A stretch of DNA of 64,000 nt, taken from the NCBI GenBank assembly GCA_002269645.1, contig NIVC01002991.1:1-64000 (forward strand), given 5' to 3'. The DNA comes from Macrostomum lignano (Eukaryota). A program made the position numbers and the translations under genes. Each line of letters starts with the position of its first letter. Position 1 is the first letter of the stretch. The notes beneath the pieces are model-generated. The model had not been told where the DNA came from, did no database searches, and saw nothing but the letters and a program-made list of their open reading frames with translations. Of this stretch, positions 21,190-51,376 are shown piece by piece.

Positions 21190-21366
21190 GTGTACATGCC
21201 TGAAGATTAGACAGTCAGGGCCGCTGTACACTCCGTGTGTCACCTTGAGTATGAGTGCTGTGCCTGAGTACAGTACTGGCGCGCTTGTGTGCTCAGGACT
21301 CATCGGAATGGGCTGAGTTGCCGTTAGGGCTGCTTGTGTGGCGATGTCGCCGTGGGCATTGCGCCA
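21190..21366 (+). mobile_element. SINE-family copy split by the Chapaev-like transposon (continues at 24585-24600)
   Basis: Matches the SINE body at 10490-10571/11207-11290 and the inverted copy at 10180-10280. Confidence 0.75.
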
Positions 21367-24300
21367 CACAGGTAGGAGGAATTCAAGTTAAATGCAAAAA
21401 AATTGCCCATAATCGGTTTTTTGTTCATGGGATAGAATTTGTACCCCTGATTCTAAAATGACCTCCCATGAAATCCTAACTGATTGGGTTCGCGAGATAT
21501 GCTCATAATTAAGTTTTTACCATAGATATGAGGCAGTCCAACAAGCAAAACTCGCCATTCAAGGATAAGTTGAATGTATTTTGTCCAAAACAGTTCTCAC
21601 CACTGTGAATTCAATTTGTAGTGTGCAATAGTTCAGGCACTATTTCAAAATATATATTTTAATTTAAACAGTGAATCAGCAAATTAATAATTATTATCAT
21701 TATTTACCTATAGAATTTTTAAGATAATGGCTAATCTTTCTAAGTCTAAACCAAAACAGAAAACTGTAATGCAATAGATATTGAGCTGTAAATTCAAATA
21801 GATTGTCATTGAGCATTTTTAGTTTTACAAGCAATTACAAATGACAGCTATTATATTGTACCGTGGCCTGTAGAAGCTGTTGTCCCATCGCTGGGTCACC
21901 ACTCCGGCGCTTAAAGTTTTGCCATACTTTACTGAAATCATGGTGAGCACTTTCACCAGCCTGCTCAGAAAATGTGCCCAGGCCTTTGCCATGCAGTCTG
22001 CAAAACTCGACCACATGGACGAACACGCAGTGAACTTTTGGTGTCACTCTAATAGGTAGCTTGCAGTAGGACTCTCGAAACTGCTGAATCAGCTGTTCAT
22101 ATTCAGGCTGTAGCTTCTCCCCAAAGCAAGCGTGTACCACTTCACGGAAGCATTGAAGGGCTTCACCAAACTGCTTCAGCCGCTCAGGCAGGATGCTCGT
22201 CAGTTCATCAGCAAGTTGCAGGATTGCGTGGCACTGGTTGCCCTCGAATGATCCTCCGCGATAGTCAGCGCGCCCGATGTTATGGCTTGCAGCCCAGCTG
22301 AGTACATGACCTCCGTCAGCTTCAAGCGAGTCGACGATCTTGTTAACAGCTCCAATGAGAAGATGCAGCTCAGGTGGGGGCAGCTTGTTGAGTATCGGCT
22401 CATCTTCTCCACCAGACAAAAGGGGTTTGTTAACACAGCTTTTAAAAAGTTTGGCCGATCGCAAATCATTGCCTGCTTCGGAAAAGGCAGCTGCATTCTT
22501 TGTTACACTGCCAAATGTGCGCGTCAGACCATCCGCAGCGAATGGAGCCTTTGCCTCGCACCATGTACATGGGTACATTGCCGCGTGATTCTGCAAGCCA
22601 ATCACTATGTTGGCAAGCTTGAGATCACAAGCAACAGTAAACGAAATCGCCTGTAGATTCAGAGAGTCCAGTAGTAGTTTTACGTTGAGATAAGTCTCAC
22701 TAACATCAGGAGCAATAGCGATGATCATTAATTTTTTAACACCAGAGTTGAGAAACTGGCGGCTGCAGGCTAACTTCTTTACTGGCGATGCTGCAGGCTC
22801 AGACTCACCGGTCACAGTCAGCACAACTTTCAGAGAGCCTCCTCCGCCATCAATTCCAATCTTGACAAAGCTGTTCTCGATGCCACGCTCGGTGCAAATA
22901 TGATTTAGCAAACCTTGAAGATCGGAGCAGATCACGGCTGGCCTTGGTCCCGAAACCTCCTGAGTCTGTCCAGATGAACGTATGAATGGCAGCTGAACTA
23001 ACGCGAAGAAGCTTGTTAGGCAGCGGCCTCTCTTCTGCAGCTCTTCACGAAGGTTAGGCTCGATCACATGCCGGCCTGCACCTAACCTAAGAATGCTGGC
23101 CAGCTTTAGAGTCTGCTTGCTGCTTAAACTAAGGCCGACTTTCAAAGCCGAAATTGTTTCGTGGCTTATATGTCCTTTCCTAGAAACACTTGTTATAGGT
23201 TCAGCGGCTGAGCTAGAGGCTACCTTGACTCGAAGAGGTTTACCAGCAGTTTGACTTAGTACAATACCACCTGCTGCAGCCTCATTACACTCCTTGATGA
23301 CTGAGCTAGCCAGCTGGTGCTTGGTAAGAGGAGATATTTTGTCTCGCAAATTCTTTAATTTGGTTGTTTTATTGCAGCGATGCTCCAGGCCGGGTCCGAT
23401 CCGTGACATGCAATGCGAGCAGAGTTTTTGAATCGCAGTAGCCTCTGCCACAGCAGGACGACCTCGGCCTGCTGGTGGACCTGTGGCCAAGTATTTGGTG
23501 TCTGGCACTGCACTGCTGCTCCTGTGTGAGCTGGCCAAGCTACACAGCTCACAGTTGCAGTCAGGGTTGCCACGAGTTGAAGGCGGCAGAGACTGAAGGT
23601 CGGTAACTATCTGGTCATACGCCAGTAGGACTGGAATAGGTCGCGAATCTGGGCAGGACAAAGACGAAAGCTTCCTTCTGCAGCCGTCACATATGCCAGA
23701 TGGAAGATATTGTCTTTCTACCTTGAAGCCTTCGTACACTGTAGATTGAATTAGTTCAATCTGATGCTCCGTCAAAGGGCGATGCGCTCTTCGAAGACAC
23801 ATGGCACACAGTGCCTGGAGATTTTCTTCGTGGTTTCTTTTCTTTGGCATTGTAGTTGATGAGTAAAAACAAGAAATTTGTTTGGACAGTTGATCAATTG
23901 AAACAAAATATTCTAAAATGCTCTAAATACTCATTTACATCACCATAAATTGAGCAACTGCTCATGATTTAGGTATAAAGGGATCGATAAAAAATAATGT
24001 GCAAATCGTGTGTGTGATCACAAGCGAAATTTTGCCTTTTGCCGTTTAATGGTGGCGGGTTGAATGTACATATTTTTATCGATTATACGTCAGGTGATTT
24101 TATTGCATATTTCATGATCGTGGTGGTAAATAGACTTAGAAGACTGTACAATACTTGTTATCTTCTCTAATTTAGAGAATCAAACTTATTTATATAGAAG
24201 AGGCCAATTCTTTACGCTAAGAATGTACAGCATAGCATCAGTTGTAACATCGCACACTTAACAAAGTTGCCTTGAGTTTTTTGTTTTGTTTTACCCTACA

Positions 24301-24584
24301 AAAAGGATGATTAAACATACATGCACTCAATACAAATTGAATACACAGTGGTGAGAACTGTTTTGGAAAAAATACATTAAACTTATCCTTGAATGGCGAG
24401 TTTTGCTTGTTGGACTGCCTCATATCTATGGTAAAAACTTAATTATGAGCATATCTCGCGAACCCAATCAGTTAGGATTTCATGGGAGGTCATTTTAGAA
24501 TCAGGGGTAAAAATTCTATCCCATGAGCAAAAAACCGATTATGGGCAATTTTTTTGCATTTAACTTGAATTCCTCCTACCTGTG
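21367..24584 (-). mobile_element. Full-length DNA transposon (3218 bp), Chapaev-like, with a RAG1/Transib-fold transposase
   Basis: 254-bp TIRs (21367-21620 and 24331-24584, about 5 mismatches by eye), CACAGG...CCTGTG termini, 4-bp TSD GCCA (21363-21366 and 24585-24588), and a single intact ORF. Confidence 0.93.
21835..23850 (-). CDS. 671-aa DDE transposase with N-terminal zinc-binding motifs
   Basis: H-x7-CxxC...CxxC N-terminus, CxCxxC, AT-hook-like GRGRP, CxxC...HxC. Core motifs GIDGGGGSLK (D), CDLK (D), YPCTWC, PPELHLLIG, FEGNQC, PKVHCVFVHV, FSEQAGESAH (E) parallel the RAG1/Transib/Chapaev motifs. Confidence 0.9.
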   Translation of the reverse strand: MPKKRNHEENLQALCAMCLRRAHRPLTEHQIELIQSTVYEGFKVERQYLPSGICDGCRRKLSSLSCPDSRPIPVLLAYDQIVTDLQSLPPSTRGNPDCNCELCSLASSHRSSSAVPDTKYLATGPPAGRGRPAVAEATAIQKLCSHCMSRIGPGLEHRCNKTTKLKNLRDKISPLTKHQLASSVIKECNEAAAGGIVLSQTAGKPLRVKVASSSAAEPITSVSRKGHISHETISALKVGLSLSSKQTLKLASILRLGAGRHVIEPNLREELQKRGRCLTSFFALVQLPFIRSSGQTQEVSGPRPAVICSDLQGLLNHICTERGIENSFVKIGIDGGGGSLKVVLTVTGESEPAASPVKKLACSRQFLNSGVKKLMIIAIAPDVSETYLNVKLLLDSLNLQAISFTVACDLKLANIVIGLQNHAAMYPCTWCEAKAPFAADGLTRTFGSVTKNAAAFSEAGNDLRSAKLFKSCVNKPLLSGGEDEPILNKLPPPELHLLIGAVNKIVDSLEADGGHVLSWAASHNIGRADYRGGSFEGNQCHAILQLADELTSILPERLKQFGEALQCFREVVHACFGEKLQPEYEQLIQQFRESYCKLPIRVTPKVHCVFVHVVEFCRLHGKGLGTFSEQAGESAHHDFSKVWQNFKRRSGDPAMGQQLLQATVQYNSCHL

Positions 24585-24825
24585 GCCAGGGTGCCCGCAG
24601 CTTTGGACCCTTATAGTTACTCATTGAGAACTCATTCCGGCTTGGCGAGAAAGTCACTAAAATCGAAAATAATAGTAAAAGAATAATAACAGAATAGCTC
24701 TGACAGCATAACCAACAAAAATGATTAACTACAACACAATGAGTTCACAATAAGCAGAGTCGCATTTTGATACAAGCAATAATGGTCCACGAATGCCTAC
24801 TTATGGGCCAAACAACAATTTCTTA

Positions 24826-28156: not shown

Positions 28157-30976
28157 ATGTCTTCAACTGAAGCTTCAAACAACAGCGGCGTCAATGGGAC
28201 GGAAGCGGCCTCCAGTCGCAGCTTGCTAAGGCGTATCGTGGACTTTCTTGATGAAGCAGACTGGAGCTTCAAGAAGGATAAAGACAGGTGAGTTTCAGAT
28301 TTTTTTGCAGCGTTGTACACCTGCTAGTTACTTCGCAGCGGTACGAGTTTGACCAACAACCGATCTACTTGCCTTTCAGACCAATTGTAAAATTTATATC
28401 GCCGGACAGCCTGATGTCCGAGTACGCCGAGATGCTGGGCCTTCCGGACAAGCCCGTGCCCGAGGACGTCCTGCTTGACAATCTGAAGACAGTCTACGAC
28501 CTTAGCGTCACGTCCAACCATCCGCGCTTCTATAACCAGCTTTTCGGTCGCGTTCACGAAGAGTCCGTTGTTGGATCTTTGCTAACTGACGCCATCAATG
28601 CGAGCATGTAAGCGGACTTGTTTACCTTCTTAAACTCTTTTTAGCTTATTATAACATTAACGGTAGCGAGTTTAGGCGAGTCTAGACCCCGTGGGTTCAC
28701 GAGTAGGTCAAAGGGACTCTCTCAAAGGAAGCTTTTCGGTGATGTCATCCAACTTATTCCACATGCTGCTTTGAATACCGAAGCAAGTAAAATAAATAGA
28801 AGCTAGACTATTAATCCCACGGGTGCCTGTAATTGTTAATCAAATCGTCCTGTTCACGTCCTATATATTTTCTTAGTCTAACTAACTACTAAAAAACTAC
28901 TAAACACAACAGCTACACTTACGAAGTTGCTCCAGTGTTCACTGTGATGGAGCGTCTAGCAATGCAGCAATTCTTGGAATTATTTGGCTTCCAAAATGGC
29001 GAAGGAGTCTGCACTCCGGGCGGTTCAATTGGTAACATGTACGCCATCAGTCTGGCTAAGTCGGCTGTATTCCCCGACGCCAGACGGCTCGGTCTCGCTG
29101 CTATGCCGCCGGCCAAGATCTACGTGTCAATGGAGGTGTGTTCGCGCTCGATGTTAGTTCTGTTTGAAAGGCTCTGCGTATCTATCAAAGATGCAATTCA
29201 ATAATAATACAATTTTCAGAGTCACTACTCGATGGTGAAAGGCGCCAGCTTCATGGGATTCGGAGAGAACGCGGTCGTCAAGGTTGCAACCGATGAACAC
29301 GGACGAATGAAAGTTGACGCGTTGAGGGAGCACATCAAATCGGACACTGAGAATGTAAGGCTTTTTGCTTTTGAATTTCTGTTTACATGTCAGAGTCAAG
29401 GACGACTTAAGTAGAAGGACGGGAAACCTCGTTTCTTAGAAAAGTTTTGAATGCACTTTTTCCCGAAAAAATACACTACGGAGATAGGAAGTTTTCATTT
29501 TTTCAGCACAAAAATTGTTATTGCGTTTGATAGGAGGCAGATCCAGTGTTCATATTTTGATATGTTGTGCCTTTTTTATTGCTCTATCGATATTCATAAA
29601 GCTTTTCGTTCAGAAAACTAGGATTCTATGTTGATTTTTTTTTCTACGTATATTTCCTGTATCTAAAAATCACAAAAATGCATGACACAGCTCCAATATT
29701 TGGTTTTATGAACCTATTTTATCATCTCTGTTACAAATATTTGCTACACAGTCGGGTGAGAATGATAAAATAGACTCATAAAACCAAAGAGCCGAGCCGT
29801 GGCATTCTAATGTATTTCAAGCACAAGACACGCGAAAATATACGAAGAATAAAAAATTAACATAGAATCCTAGTTTTCTGAACGAAAAGCTTTATGAATA
29901 TCGATAGAGCAATAAAAAAGGCACAACATATCAAAATATGAACACTGGATCTGCCTCCTATCAAACGCAATAACAATTTTTGTGCTGAAAAAATGAAAAC
30001 TTCCTATCTCCGTAGTGTATTTTTTCGGGAAAAAGTGCCTTCAAAACTTTTCTAAGAAACGAGGTTTCCCGTCCTTCTACTTAAGTCGTCCTTGGTCAGA
30101 GTTTGACTGTCAACACTTTTACGGTGGTTTTCATTTTTTCTGATGTTTCATTCGATATAGGGTCAGAAGCCTCTAATGGTGGTGGCCACCGCGGGCACAA
30201 CTGTGCTAGGCGTCTACGACCCAATATCCGAGGTGGCCAACGTGTGTCAAGAGTTTAACGTCTGGTTGCACGTCGATGGCTGCCTAGGCGGCAGTGCCAT
30301 CCTGTCGGAGAGCCGCCGGCACCTGTTGGATGGTTGCCAACGCGCTGACTCGCTGACTTGGAATCCGCACAAAATGCTTGGCGTCAATCTGCAGTGCAGC
30401 CTGCTGCTCACCAGACACTCTGGCGCTCTGCAAAGAGCTCACGGCACTCAAGCGGCTTACCTGTTTCAGCAGGACAAATTCTATCCACCGCAGTTTGACA
30501 TTGGCGACAAGGTGATCCAGTGCGGTCGCAAAGTTGACGTGCTCAAACTCTGGGCCGTGTGGCGCGGCCTTGGCAAGTCCGGCCTGGGCGATCTGGTTGA
30601 CCGAAAGTTCACCCTGGCTAAGCAGCTAGCCAATCTGATTGCGCAACGACAAAAGACCGACGGCTCGTTTGAGCTGATTGCCGAGCCGGAGAGTACCAAC
30701 GTGCTGTTCTGGTACATCCCGCCGGCTTTGCGCGGCCAGCCCGCCGACTGGAGCAAGCGGGACGACTCTTGGTGGCGCCAAATGGACGCTGTGGCGCCTC
30801 TCCTAAAAAAGCGAATGACCTTGGACGGCTCAATGCTGATTGGCTATCAGAAATGCGCCGCCTCTAAAAATATCAACTGCTGGAGAATGGTCTGCTCGCA
30901 GGACACCAACTCTGAGCAGGACATGGAGCGCATTGTCGGCGAGTTTTGTCGCTTCGGCGAAGACATTAGCGTCTGA
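28157..30976 (+). CDS. CSAD: Group II PLP-dependent decarboxylase, CSAD/GADL1-like, about 510 aa
   Basis: Exons 28157-28287, 28380-28607, 28913-29135, 29220-29354, 30161-30976 sum to 1533 nt. Motifs HPRFYNQLF, YTYEVAPVF, TAGTTVLG, WLHVD, WNPHK (PLP lysine), YLFQQDK, IQCGRKVD. Family is certain; exact orthology is less so. Confidence 0.88.
29397..30093. mobile_element. Foldback-type non-autonomous TIR element in CSAD intron 4
   Basis: About 240 bp of near-perfect TIR (similarity extends to about 315 bp) beginning CAAGGACGAC. 8-bp TSD GTCAGAGT at 29389-29396 and 30094-30101. Confidence 0.93.

Positions 30977-47479: not shown

Positions 47480-51376
<3,897 letters not shown>

Follow-up and report, generated by a model that had tools for sequence, protein, structure and literature searches.

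A probable Chapaev-superfamily transposon with a RAG1/Transib-type transposase and bipartite ends in the flatworm Macrostomum lignano

The analysed stretch of DNA, here called the window, consists of 64,000 nucleotides of Macrostomum lignano contig NIVC01002991.1 (GCA_002269645.1; positions 1-64,000, forward strand). It contains a 3218-bp element at positions 21367-24584, composed of two inverted-repeat arms and a single open reading frame (ORF). The element is most probably an autonomous Chapaev-superfamily DNA transposon, from the RING-less sub-lineage that includes Chapaev-1/2/5_HM and Chapaev-1_AA, an assignment to which we give a probability of about 0.88. It is based on the matches of the N-terminal domain to published Chapa-domain sequences, the presence of the Chapaev hallmarks, and the tree position of the matched families. 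The window copy is an intact and recently mobile transposon. It represents a new family specific to this species, within a superfamily described in 2007 whose kinship with RAG1 is already in the literature, and no new lineage. An initial annotation, made from the sequence alone, had raised the possibility of an undescribed family; this holds at most at the level of a family in one species, as the sub-lineage and its link to RAG1 were described between 2007 and 2015.

The element starts with CACAGGTAGG and ends with CCTACCTGTG (CACAGG...CCTGTG), and GCCA is found on both sides. These termini and the GCCA duplication had been read correctly at the outset and are backed by empty sites with a single GCCA. 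The arms of the terminal inverted repeat (TIR) had been given as 254 bp with about 98% identity; the identity was reproduced, and the length is corrected to 257 bp. The ORF of 671 amino acids (aa) occupies the minus strand at 21835-23850 and is free of stops, as first noted. Outside it, the remaining 1.2 kb comprises the TIRs and short non-coding stretches, and within the leader at 23851-24327 no complete ORF reaches 60 aa, apart from one of 61 aa that overlaps the TIR. Because the 3218 bp leave no room for a second gene, the element is RAG2-less, as had been proposed. Its features are located as follows.

21363-21366, no strand: left copy of the target-site duplication (TSD) GCCA, of 4 bp; the empty paralogous sites show one GCCA.
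21367-21623, plus strand: TIR of 257 bp at the 3' end relative to the transposase gene; the arms are 98% complementary, and the repeat is found at 33 places in the genome with 96-100% identity.
21367-21373, plus strand, mirrored at 24578-24584: terminal heptamer CACAGGT; CAC is invariant in 14 lineages (1.34 bits per position).
21396-21410, plus strand, mirrored at 24541-24555: subterminal A-rich box AAAAAAATTGCCCAT, 22 nt past the heptamer, a putative transposase-binding, nonamer-like site.
21835-23850, minus strand: intron-less transposase ORF, 671 aa plus stop; AlphaFold2 model with a mean predicted local distance difference test score (pLDDT) of 83.4 and a RAG1/HzTransib fold.
21952-22851, minus strand: catalytic core, with residues invariant or nearly so.
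21952-21954, minus strand: E633 of the catalytic core.
22015-22032, minus strand: H607xxxxH612 of the catalytic core.
22363-22368, minus strand: L495-H496 of the catalytic core.
22558-22569, minus strand: C428xxC431 of the catalytic core.
22624-22626, minus strand: D409 of the catalytic core.
22849-22851, minus strand: D334 of the catalytic core, a putative counterpart of D600 of RAG1.
23374-23421, minus strand: C2HC zinc knuckle C144xxC147...H157xC159; C144, C147, and H157 are invariant or nearly so and C159 is nearly invariant in two homologue alignments.
23542-23832, minus strand: Chapa domain, residues 7-103 (H7, C15xxC18, C54xxC57, C98xC100xxC103), a complex zinc finger common to the RAG1/RAG1L N-terminus; assigned with a hidden Markov model (HMM) against published Chapa rows, pLDDT 82-93.
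23851-24327, minus strand: non-coding leader of 477 bp between the TIR and the start codon, presumably the promoter and 5' untranslated region.
24328-24584, minus strand: TIR of 257 bp at the 5' end relative to the transposase gene, located by inverted-repeat comparison.
24585-24588, no strand: right copy of the 4-bp TSD GCCA, as judged from the empty sites.

Proof of the insertion boundaries comes from an exact empty site, present in this genome as a paralogue. The joined window flanks match C1013:353902-354201 at 100% over 300 bp, and a second empty paralogous site on C364 matches them at 96%. At both loci the sequence is cattgcGCCAgggtgc, in which GCCA occurs once and the element is absent. 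Over 3 kb, the two empty-site loci are only 95-96% identical to the window flanks, and they are therefore paralogues rather than alleles, which makes the window insertion younger than the duplication. Some copies are younger than a local genome duplication. The left flank of the insertion (window 21217-21366) belongs to a dispersed repeat, of which over 35 copies at about 80% identity lie elsewhere in the genome.

The N-terminal part of the transposase provides evidence for its classification. The Chapa domain has been defined as a complex N-terminal zinc finger that is present in Chapaev, Chapaev3, TransibSU, and RAG1 and missing from canonical Transib (Kapitonov & Koonin 2015, PMC4411706), and a 2026 preprint reports the solved structure of the RAG1 version and confirms Chapa-type folds in Chapaev. 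An HMM of the first 110 residues of the window family was compared with the Chapa rows in Additional file 5 of PMC4411706, with Z set to a deliberately large 1e5. The closest rows are those of Chapaev-2_HM (E 2.8e-14), Chapaev-1_AA (6e-8), Chapaev-1_HM (1.9e-6), and Chapaev-5_HM (4.8e-5), and the family can be grouped with these rows by its Chapa domain. Two echinoderm RAG1L proteins follow at 1e-4 and 1e-3 and the best Chapaev3 row at 6e-3, while the RING-bearing Chapaevs and vertebrate RAG1 give no significant score. The H-x7-CxxC zinc region, which had been said to fit Chapaev, corresponds to this published domain. In the tree of Kojima 2025, Chapaev-1/2/5/18_HM form a sub-lineage within the Chapaev clade, which has a bootstrap of 100.

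The remaining Chapaev features are in line with this placement. Zhang et al. 2014 (PMC4079192) list as hallmarks a TSD of 3-4 bp, termini that are invariably CAC...GTG, and three motifs, C(2)C, LH, and H(4)H. The window element has CAC/GTG ends and a 4-bp TSD, and its protein contains C428xxC431, L495-H496 within an invariant PPPELH block, and H607xxxxH612. In addition, the DDE residues expected of a Chapaev transposase (D334, D409, and E633) are invariant or nearly so and are predicted to lie in an RNase-H-type RAG1/Transib fold. The suggestion of Chapaev already made on the basis of the termini, TSD, and zinc region is hence upheld by the full set of hallmarks.

The transposase is composed of three parts. 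The Chapa domain at the N-terminus is followed by a C2HC knuckle and then by the DDE core of RAG1/Transib type, with D334, D409, and E633. All RAG1-like motifs listed initially, GIDGG (here GIDGGGG), CDLK, YPCTWC, KVHCVFVH, and SEQAGES, are present and invariant or nearly so in an alignment of 30 full-length homologues that are 30-42% identical to the window protein. Their occurrence is not due to chance. D334, D409, C428, C431, and the PPPELH block (E494, L495, H496) are invariant in this alignment, and H607, E629, E633, C144, C147, H157, and C159 are nearly invariant; D409 and E633 are separated by 224 aa. A single-sequence search of the PDB sequences returned nothing relevant, and a profile of the alignment searched against 177,635 PDB sequences placed RAG1 and amphioxus RAG1L on top, at E 0.15-0.9. 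The profile alignment equates D409 with D708 of RAG1, C428/C431 with C727/C730, H607/H612 with H937/H942, and E633 with E962. As this alignment starts at profile position 404, past the first D, the equivalence of D334 and D600 is suggested by the GIDGGGG motif and the fold.

At the structural level, the relationship becomes clear. The AlphaFold2 model was built on the homologue alignment, and in a Foldseek search against the PDB its matches at ranks 1-26 are RAG1 chains (E 8e-12 to 9e-9, about 570 aligned columns), followed at ranks 27-30 by HzTransib (E 4e-8 to 1e-5, template modelling score (TM) up to 0.58, target-normalised). The next match is Hermes (E 0.064, TM 0.21-0.26), and nothing else falls below 0.06. 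As RAG1 and HzTransib are alone at the top, the search supports the RAG1/Transib fold that had been anticipated from the motifs. A hAT affiliation was rejected on account of the Hermes scores and of the TSD, which is 4 bp and not 8 bp.

The assembly containing the window (764 Mb, 5,269 contigs) harbors 13 full-length and 4 truncated copies of the window family at about 14 independent sites. All 14 oriented copies have CACAGG/CCTGTG ends. The full-length copies are 98.2-99.97% identical to one another, and the window copy and copy L037, at unrelated loci, differ by about 1 base in 3.2 kb. Seven copies keep the 671-aa frame, two have a frame of 674 aa with an altered C-terminus, and the others are broken; the best database match to the ORF is a 674-aa M. 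lignano 'hypothetical protein' at NCBI with 98% identity. The youth of the family, proposed before any copy search, follows from this inter-copy identity. The identity of the two arms, which had also been taken as a sign of youth, was rejected as an age estimate: the mismatches between left and right arms (positions 58, 75, 217, and 242) are common to sister copies, and the 98% arm identity is therefore inherited and no age clock.

The target sites are consistent among these copies with one exception. A 4-bp TSD is found at 11 of the 12 window-family sites (GCCA, ACGA, GAAA, CTTG, TATT, GGCA, AAAC, ATAC, GCAA, CCCA, and ATAA), so that the TSD length read in the window extends to nearly all other copies. 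The twelfth insertion, L034 (C2188:135547-140120), is found again at C1345 (L036) and fits only the 5-bp TSD AATAC. Four paralogous empty copies of the host repeat at this site read TTTGCAATACCTCAGC, which shows that AATAC was truly duplicated. The flanks of L034 also match a third locus, C3283, carrying the truncated copy L044, and the insertion shared by the three loci is therefore older than a duplication. Over the window family and six sister families, 24 of the 25 M. lignano sites have 4 bp and one has 5 bp, and the targets are sequence-unspecific, with no consensus. The elements hence insert by a 4-bp (rarely 5-bp) staggered cut, with precise ends and at unrelated targets. The Chapaev3 subgroup was rejected on this basis, since it needs a 3-bp TWA TSD between A and T, and the sites here have 4 bp and no TWA pattern.

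Two variant copies were observed in addition. Nested in L034, at element positions ~690-2045, is an insertion of 1.36 kb that shows a TA duplication, has TIRs CGAGGTGTATCCCAAAAGTAAG and an ORF of 355 aa, and looks like Tc1/mariner. L035 and L038, at the paralogous loci C1543 and C1545, are a 2630-bp derivative with two internal deletions at about 851-1370 and 2065-2123 of the reference, a candidate non-autonomous copy.

Besides the window family, M. lignano has transposases of this clade in at least seven other length classes (665-718 aa), which are 38-42% identical to the window protein. Most of their copies have no stops (67 of 362 candidates scored). Ends were determined at 14 loci (L118-L131), with two copies of most classes; examples of sister loci are C2647:7784-9820, C475:235943-237991, C1735:171323-173380, C835:17788-19827, C40:977903-979942, and C297:309853-311844. 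By end type these loci fall into six further families, the 702- and 709-aa classes sharing one end type and the 685- and 692-aa classes another. A 4-bp TSD was found at all 13 sites checked, covering all six families, with TIRs of 125-371 bp, and relatives in other species add the 4-bp TSDs TTAT, TATA, GAGG, CACC, and TACA. The lineage as a whole is very large: a profile search of 1.84 billion representatives yielded 10,038 sequences at E<=1e-3 and 1,583 at E<=1e-30. One relative, P0028 at L115 (Pseudolycoriella hygida CM055406.1), is annotated as 'Protein doublesex' (756 aa, 21.5-kb span), with the Chapaev ORF fused to a doublesex DM domain; this is most likely a gene-model artefact joining a transposon with 156-bp TIRs to a neighbour gene.

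The ends of the element have a two-part design. The first 60 nt were compared among 14 independent lineages, comprising seven from M. lignano, two insect chromosomes, and five metagenome contigs, with the ends located by an outermost-HSP (high-scoring segment pair) approach. Contigs that stop inside the TIR (L066, L068, L070, L073, L076, and L087) and homologue contigs in which no inverted repeat was found (L050, L064, L069, L071, L075, L081, L094, and others) were left out. CAC is found in 14 of the 14 lineages. Mean conservation along the ends is distributed as follows.

Positions 1-7: heptamer, 1.34 bits per position.
Positions 8-29: spacer, 0.50 bits per position.
Positions 30-44: box, 0.87 bits per position, the best 15-nt window.
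Positions 45-60: beyond the box, 0.40 bits per position.

In the window element, CACAGGT is followed by 22 nt and then by AAAAAAATTGCCCAT, which combines an A-run with TTGCCC. Conservation of the two parts is particularly visible in L089, whose transposase is 44% identical: its heptamer agrees at 7/7 and its box at 15/15 positions, whereas the spacer is 36% and the sequence past the box 6% identical. TTGCYC starts at position 37±1 in four of the first eight lineages, for which the chance is about 1e-9 for a motif picked after seeing it. Kapitonov & Jurka (PMC1131882) described a Transib TIR consensus of CACAATG, a 23-bp spacer, and AAAAAAATC, which they compared with RSS23, a recombination signal sequence (RSS). 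Read in the same way, the window end is CACAGGT-22-AAAAAAATT, agreeing at 8/9 positions with the Transib nonamer AAAAAAATC, and is thus an RSS-like TIR. Ten of the 14 lineages reach at least 7/9 to this nonamer with a 22-24-nt spacer, and the bipartite end is also found at L089, L065, L117, L122, L127, L130, and L131. M. lignano families B and C, L115, and L116 depart from the pattern; in L116, the TTGCCC box stands at position 24, nearer the end by 13 nt. Within each element the two ends have the same spacer, and a 12/23 asymmetry is therefore absent.

Our literature search, with the original Repbase Reports outside its range, found no paper linking Chapaev termini with a heptamer/nonamer design. 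We suggest, tentatively and at odds clearly below even, that this Chapaev sub-lineage, too, has conserved the heptamer/22-23-bp spacer/A-rich 'nonamer' design of RSS23 and the Transib TIRs (seen in 10 of the 14 lineages, which come from a flatworm, a beetle, and metagenome eukaryotes and have transposases only 30-44% identical), that the design would in that case predate the split of Chapaev, Transib, and RAG and be no Transib innovation, and that M. lignano, with at least eight apparently intact families, may be the first tractable system of active Chapaev.

The mode of transposition can be modelled on the biochemistry of RAG1 and HzTransib. A transposase dimer would contact each end at two places, the terminal heptamer and, about 22 nt inward, the A-rich/TTGCCC box, and would nick at the CAC boundary. 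After release of the element, the 3'-OH ends would be integrated with a stagger of 4 bp. The element encodes no RAG2-like partner, and presumably no accessory subunit is needed.

Several points weigh against the reading of the element as an autonomous, recently mobile Chapaev transposon. Its Chapaev membership derives from the N-terminal domain, motifs, termini, and TSD and not from a core phylogeny. Pfam returned no match, either for the whole protein or for two N-terminal pieces, and the sequence-level match to RAG1 is by itself not significant (E 0.15). Residues 139-330, folded alone on a 16-sequence alignment (pLDDT 78, predicted TM 0.43), have a best PDB match of E 0.45 with RAG1 not among the matches, although isolated multi-module pieces superpose poorly; weak IHF/HU-like matches have a probability of at most 0.23. 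An NBD-like domain in this region was dropped as there was no significant PDB match, and the initial claim that LSLSSKQTLKLASILRLGAGRHVIEP (residues 240-265) resembles the RAG1 pre-core helix segment found no support, there being no sequence alignment at this position. The flanking-DNA hairpins by which the element would be released are extrapolated from RAG and HzTransib. On the supporting side, comparisons between subfamilies give a ratio of non-synonymous to synonymous substitution (dN/dS) of 0.4-0.6 (for example, 11 synonymous and 15 non-synonymous differences), weak evidence that the transposase was under weak purifying selection during family diversification, and the counts behind it are small. 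Current activity, finally, is putative and read from one assembly.

Different classifications have to be compared with this assignment. A Transib proper or a RAG-like (RAGL/ProtoRAG-type) transposon would account for RAG1 and HzTransib as the best structural matches, the resemblance of the end to the Transib TIR consensus, the one insertion with a 5-bp TSD, and the contact of the N-terminal HMM with echinoderm RAG1L (E 1e-4). The fold match is expected for any member of the CMCT clade, because the PDB holds no Chapaev or CACTA structure, and the RSS-like end is a trait shared with Transib that does not outweigh the Transib features that fail. The TSD is 4 bp at 24 of the 25 M. lignano sites instead of the 5 bp of Transib/RAGL, Transib has no Chapa/NZD-like domain, the window element has neither a RAG2L gene nor a RING finger, its N-terminus scores far better on Chapaev than on RAG1L rows, and the LH motif is diagnostic of Chapaev. 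Transib proper was accordingly rejected on the TSD (5 bp at 1 of the 25 sites) and the presence of the Chapa domain, and a RAGL/ProtoRAG-type element on its single ORF, with no convergent RAG1L and RAG2L genes inside the TIRs; together they are scarcely tenable. That the element stands for a lineage of its own in the RAG1-related radiation, new at the level of a superfamily and separate from the Chapaev groups already described, appears very unlikely. Such a lineage would be compatible with the absence of a Pfam family, with the NCBI label of hypothetical protein for the matching copy, and with a literature search, Repbase being outside it, that found no paper linking Chapaev with Macrostomum elements. 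The N-terminal matches to Chapaev-2_HM, -1_AA, -1_HM, and -5_HM (E 3e-14 to 5e-5) speak against it, as these named families sit in the bootstrap-100 Chapaev clade and the hallmarks are all present.

A more serious question is whether the transposon still moves. The window copy may look intact and yet be immobile, recently silenced or condition-dependent, a fossil of a very recent burst; we regard this as a real contender, somewhat short of even odds. All evidence comes from a single assembly, dN/dS within subfamilies is not far from neutral, differences from the consensus are mostly G>A and C>T, and M. lignano is reported to have a transposon-silencing piRNA (PIWI-interacting RNA) system (PMC4604429). 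Mobility up to the recent past is favored by the single base or so that separates the window copy from L037 in 3.2 kb at unrelated loci, by nine copies with full-length frames, and by an insertion in the window that post-dates a duplication whose copies diverge by 4-5%. That the ORF belongs to a domesticated host gene derived from a transposase, as an uninterrupted frame and an annotated gene model might suggest, is refuted by the TIRs, the TSDs, the copies at unrelated loci, and the empty paralogous sites, and its probability is essentially negligible.

Chapaev is placed in the CMC group by Repbase and RepeatMasker and in the CMCT clade in later work, and the RING-less Chapaev families of Repbase were reportedly described by Kapitonov & Jurka in 2007. 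The RING-less families Chapaev-1/2/5_HM from Hydra and Chapaev-1_AA from Aedes (PMC4411706) have the same Chapa ligand pattern as the window family, HEENR..C..C...P..IC..C...C.C..C, with significant HMM scores; they likewise have no RING finger and carry a CS.C.S.I-type motif after the Chapa domain. Their hosts belong to phyla other than Platyhelminthes, and the comparison covers the Chapa domain and not the core. CAC/GTG ends and a 4-bp TSD are shared with Chapaev as published (PMC4079192), for which the literature searched mentions neither long 257-bp TIRs nor an RSS-like bipartite end. Chapaev3 (Merrow, Garfield, and Conan; PMC4079192) belongs to the same superfamily and also ends in CAC, contains the motifs C(2)C, LH, and H(4)H, and begins with a Chapa-type finger, but differs in its 3-bp TWA TSD between A and T, compared with 4 bp and no consensus here. 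Moreover, its Chapa rows begin with C, whereas those of the window family begin with H, and the score is weak (best 6e-3).

HzTransib (PDB 6PQN, 6PQX, and 6PQY) shares the fold (E 4e-8, TM up to 0.58) and the DDE residues, together with zinc ligands of the C(2)C and H(4)H kind, and the Transib TIR, like that of the window element, consists of a heptamer, a ~23-bp spacer, and an A-rich nonamer. Transib differs by its 5-bp TSD, its short TIRs, and its missing Chapa domain. RAG1/RAG1L (ProtoRAG, PDB 6B40) gives the best structural match to the window protein (E 8e-12), with a sequence identity of 13-15%, and its N-terminal zinc-finger domain is homologous to the Chapa domain. The D-D-E and C2/H2 zinc-site core with a RAG1 fold, typical of RAGL, is found in the window protein and is common to the whole CMCT clade. 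In contrast to RAG1/RAG1L, the window element lacks a RAG2 partner, a RING/ZFA, and a detectable NBD-like module; its TSD measures 4 bp, and its two ends are symmetric, without the 12/23 difference. Elements of the CACTA type are of greater size, as a rule code for a second protein, and have a 3-bp TSD, and Mirage has a 2-bp TSD. EnSpm/CACTA and Mirage (CMC) have CA(C)...TG termini, short TSDs, and C(2)C/H(3-4)H motifs in common with the window element. Both are without a Chapa domain (PMC4411706).

Among the branches of the transposase radiation from which RAG1 arose, Chapaev has been studied least. We know of no Chapaev transposase that has been shown to work in an assay, nor of one with a solved structure. 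M. lignano is a transgenesis-capable, injectable model organism, and near-identical full-length copies in this laboratory flatworm offer a practical start for assays and structural work on Chapaev; the window family could become a new tool for gene transfer. The conserved two-part end bears on the age of the RSS architecture, a point that is testable. As a classification the result is ordinary, and its remaining interest lies in a tractable animal in which this family and its sisters are apparently lively, in the 5-bp TSD made on occasion, and in the RSS-like end.

Two further ORFs were noticed in the window. That at 30176-30976 (plus strand, 266 aa) contains a pyridoxal-dependent decarboxylase domain (PF00282, E 6e-53) and is probably a host-gene exon about 5.6 kb from the element. 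The other, at 48638-51376 (minus strand, 912 aa), has a single sub-threshold match to the Reprolysin_3 metallopeptidase domain (E 4e-4, below the Pfam cut-off).

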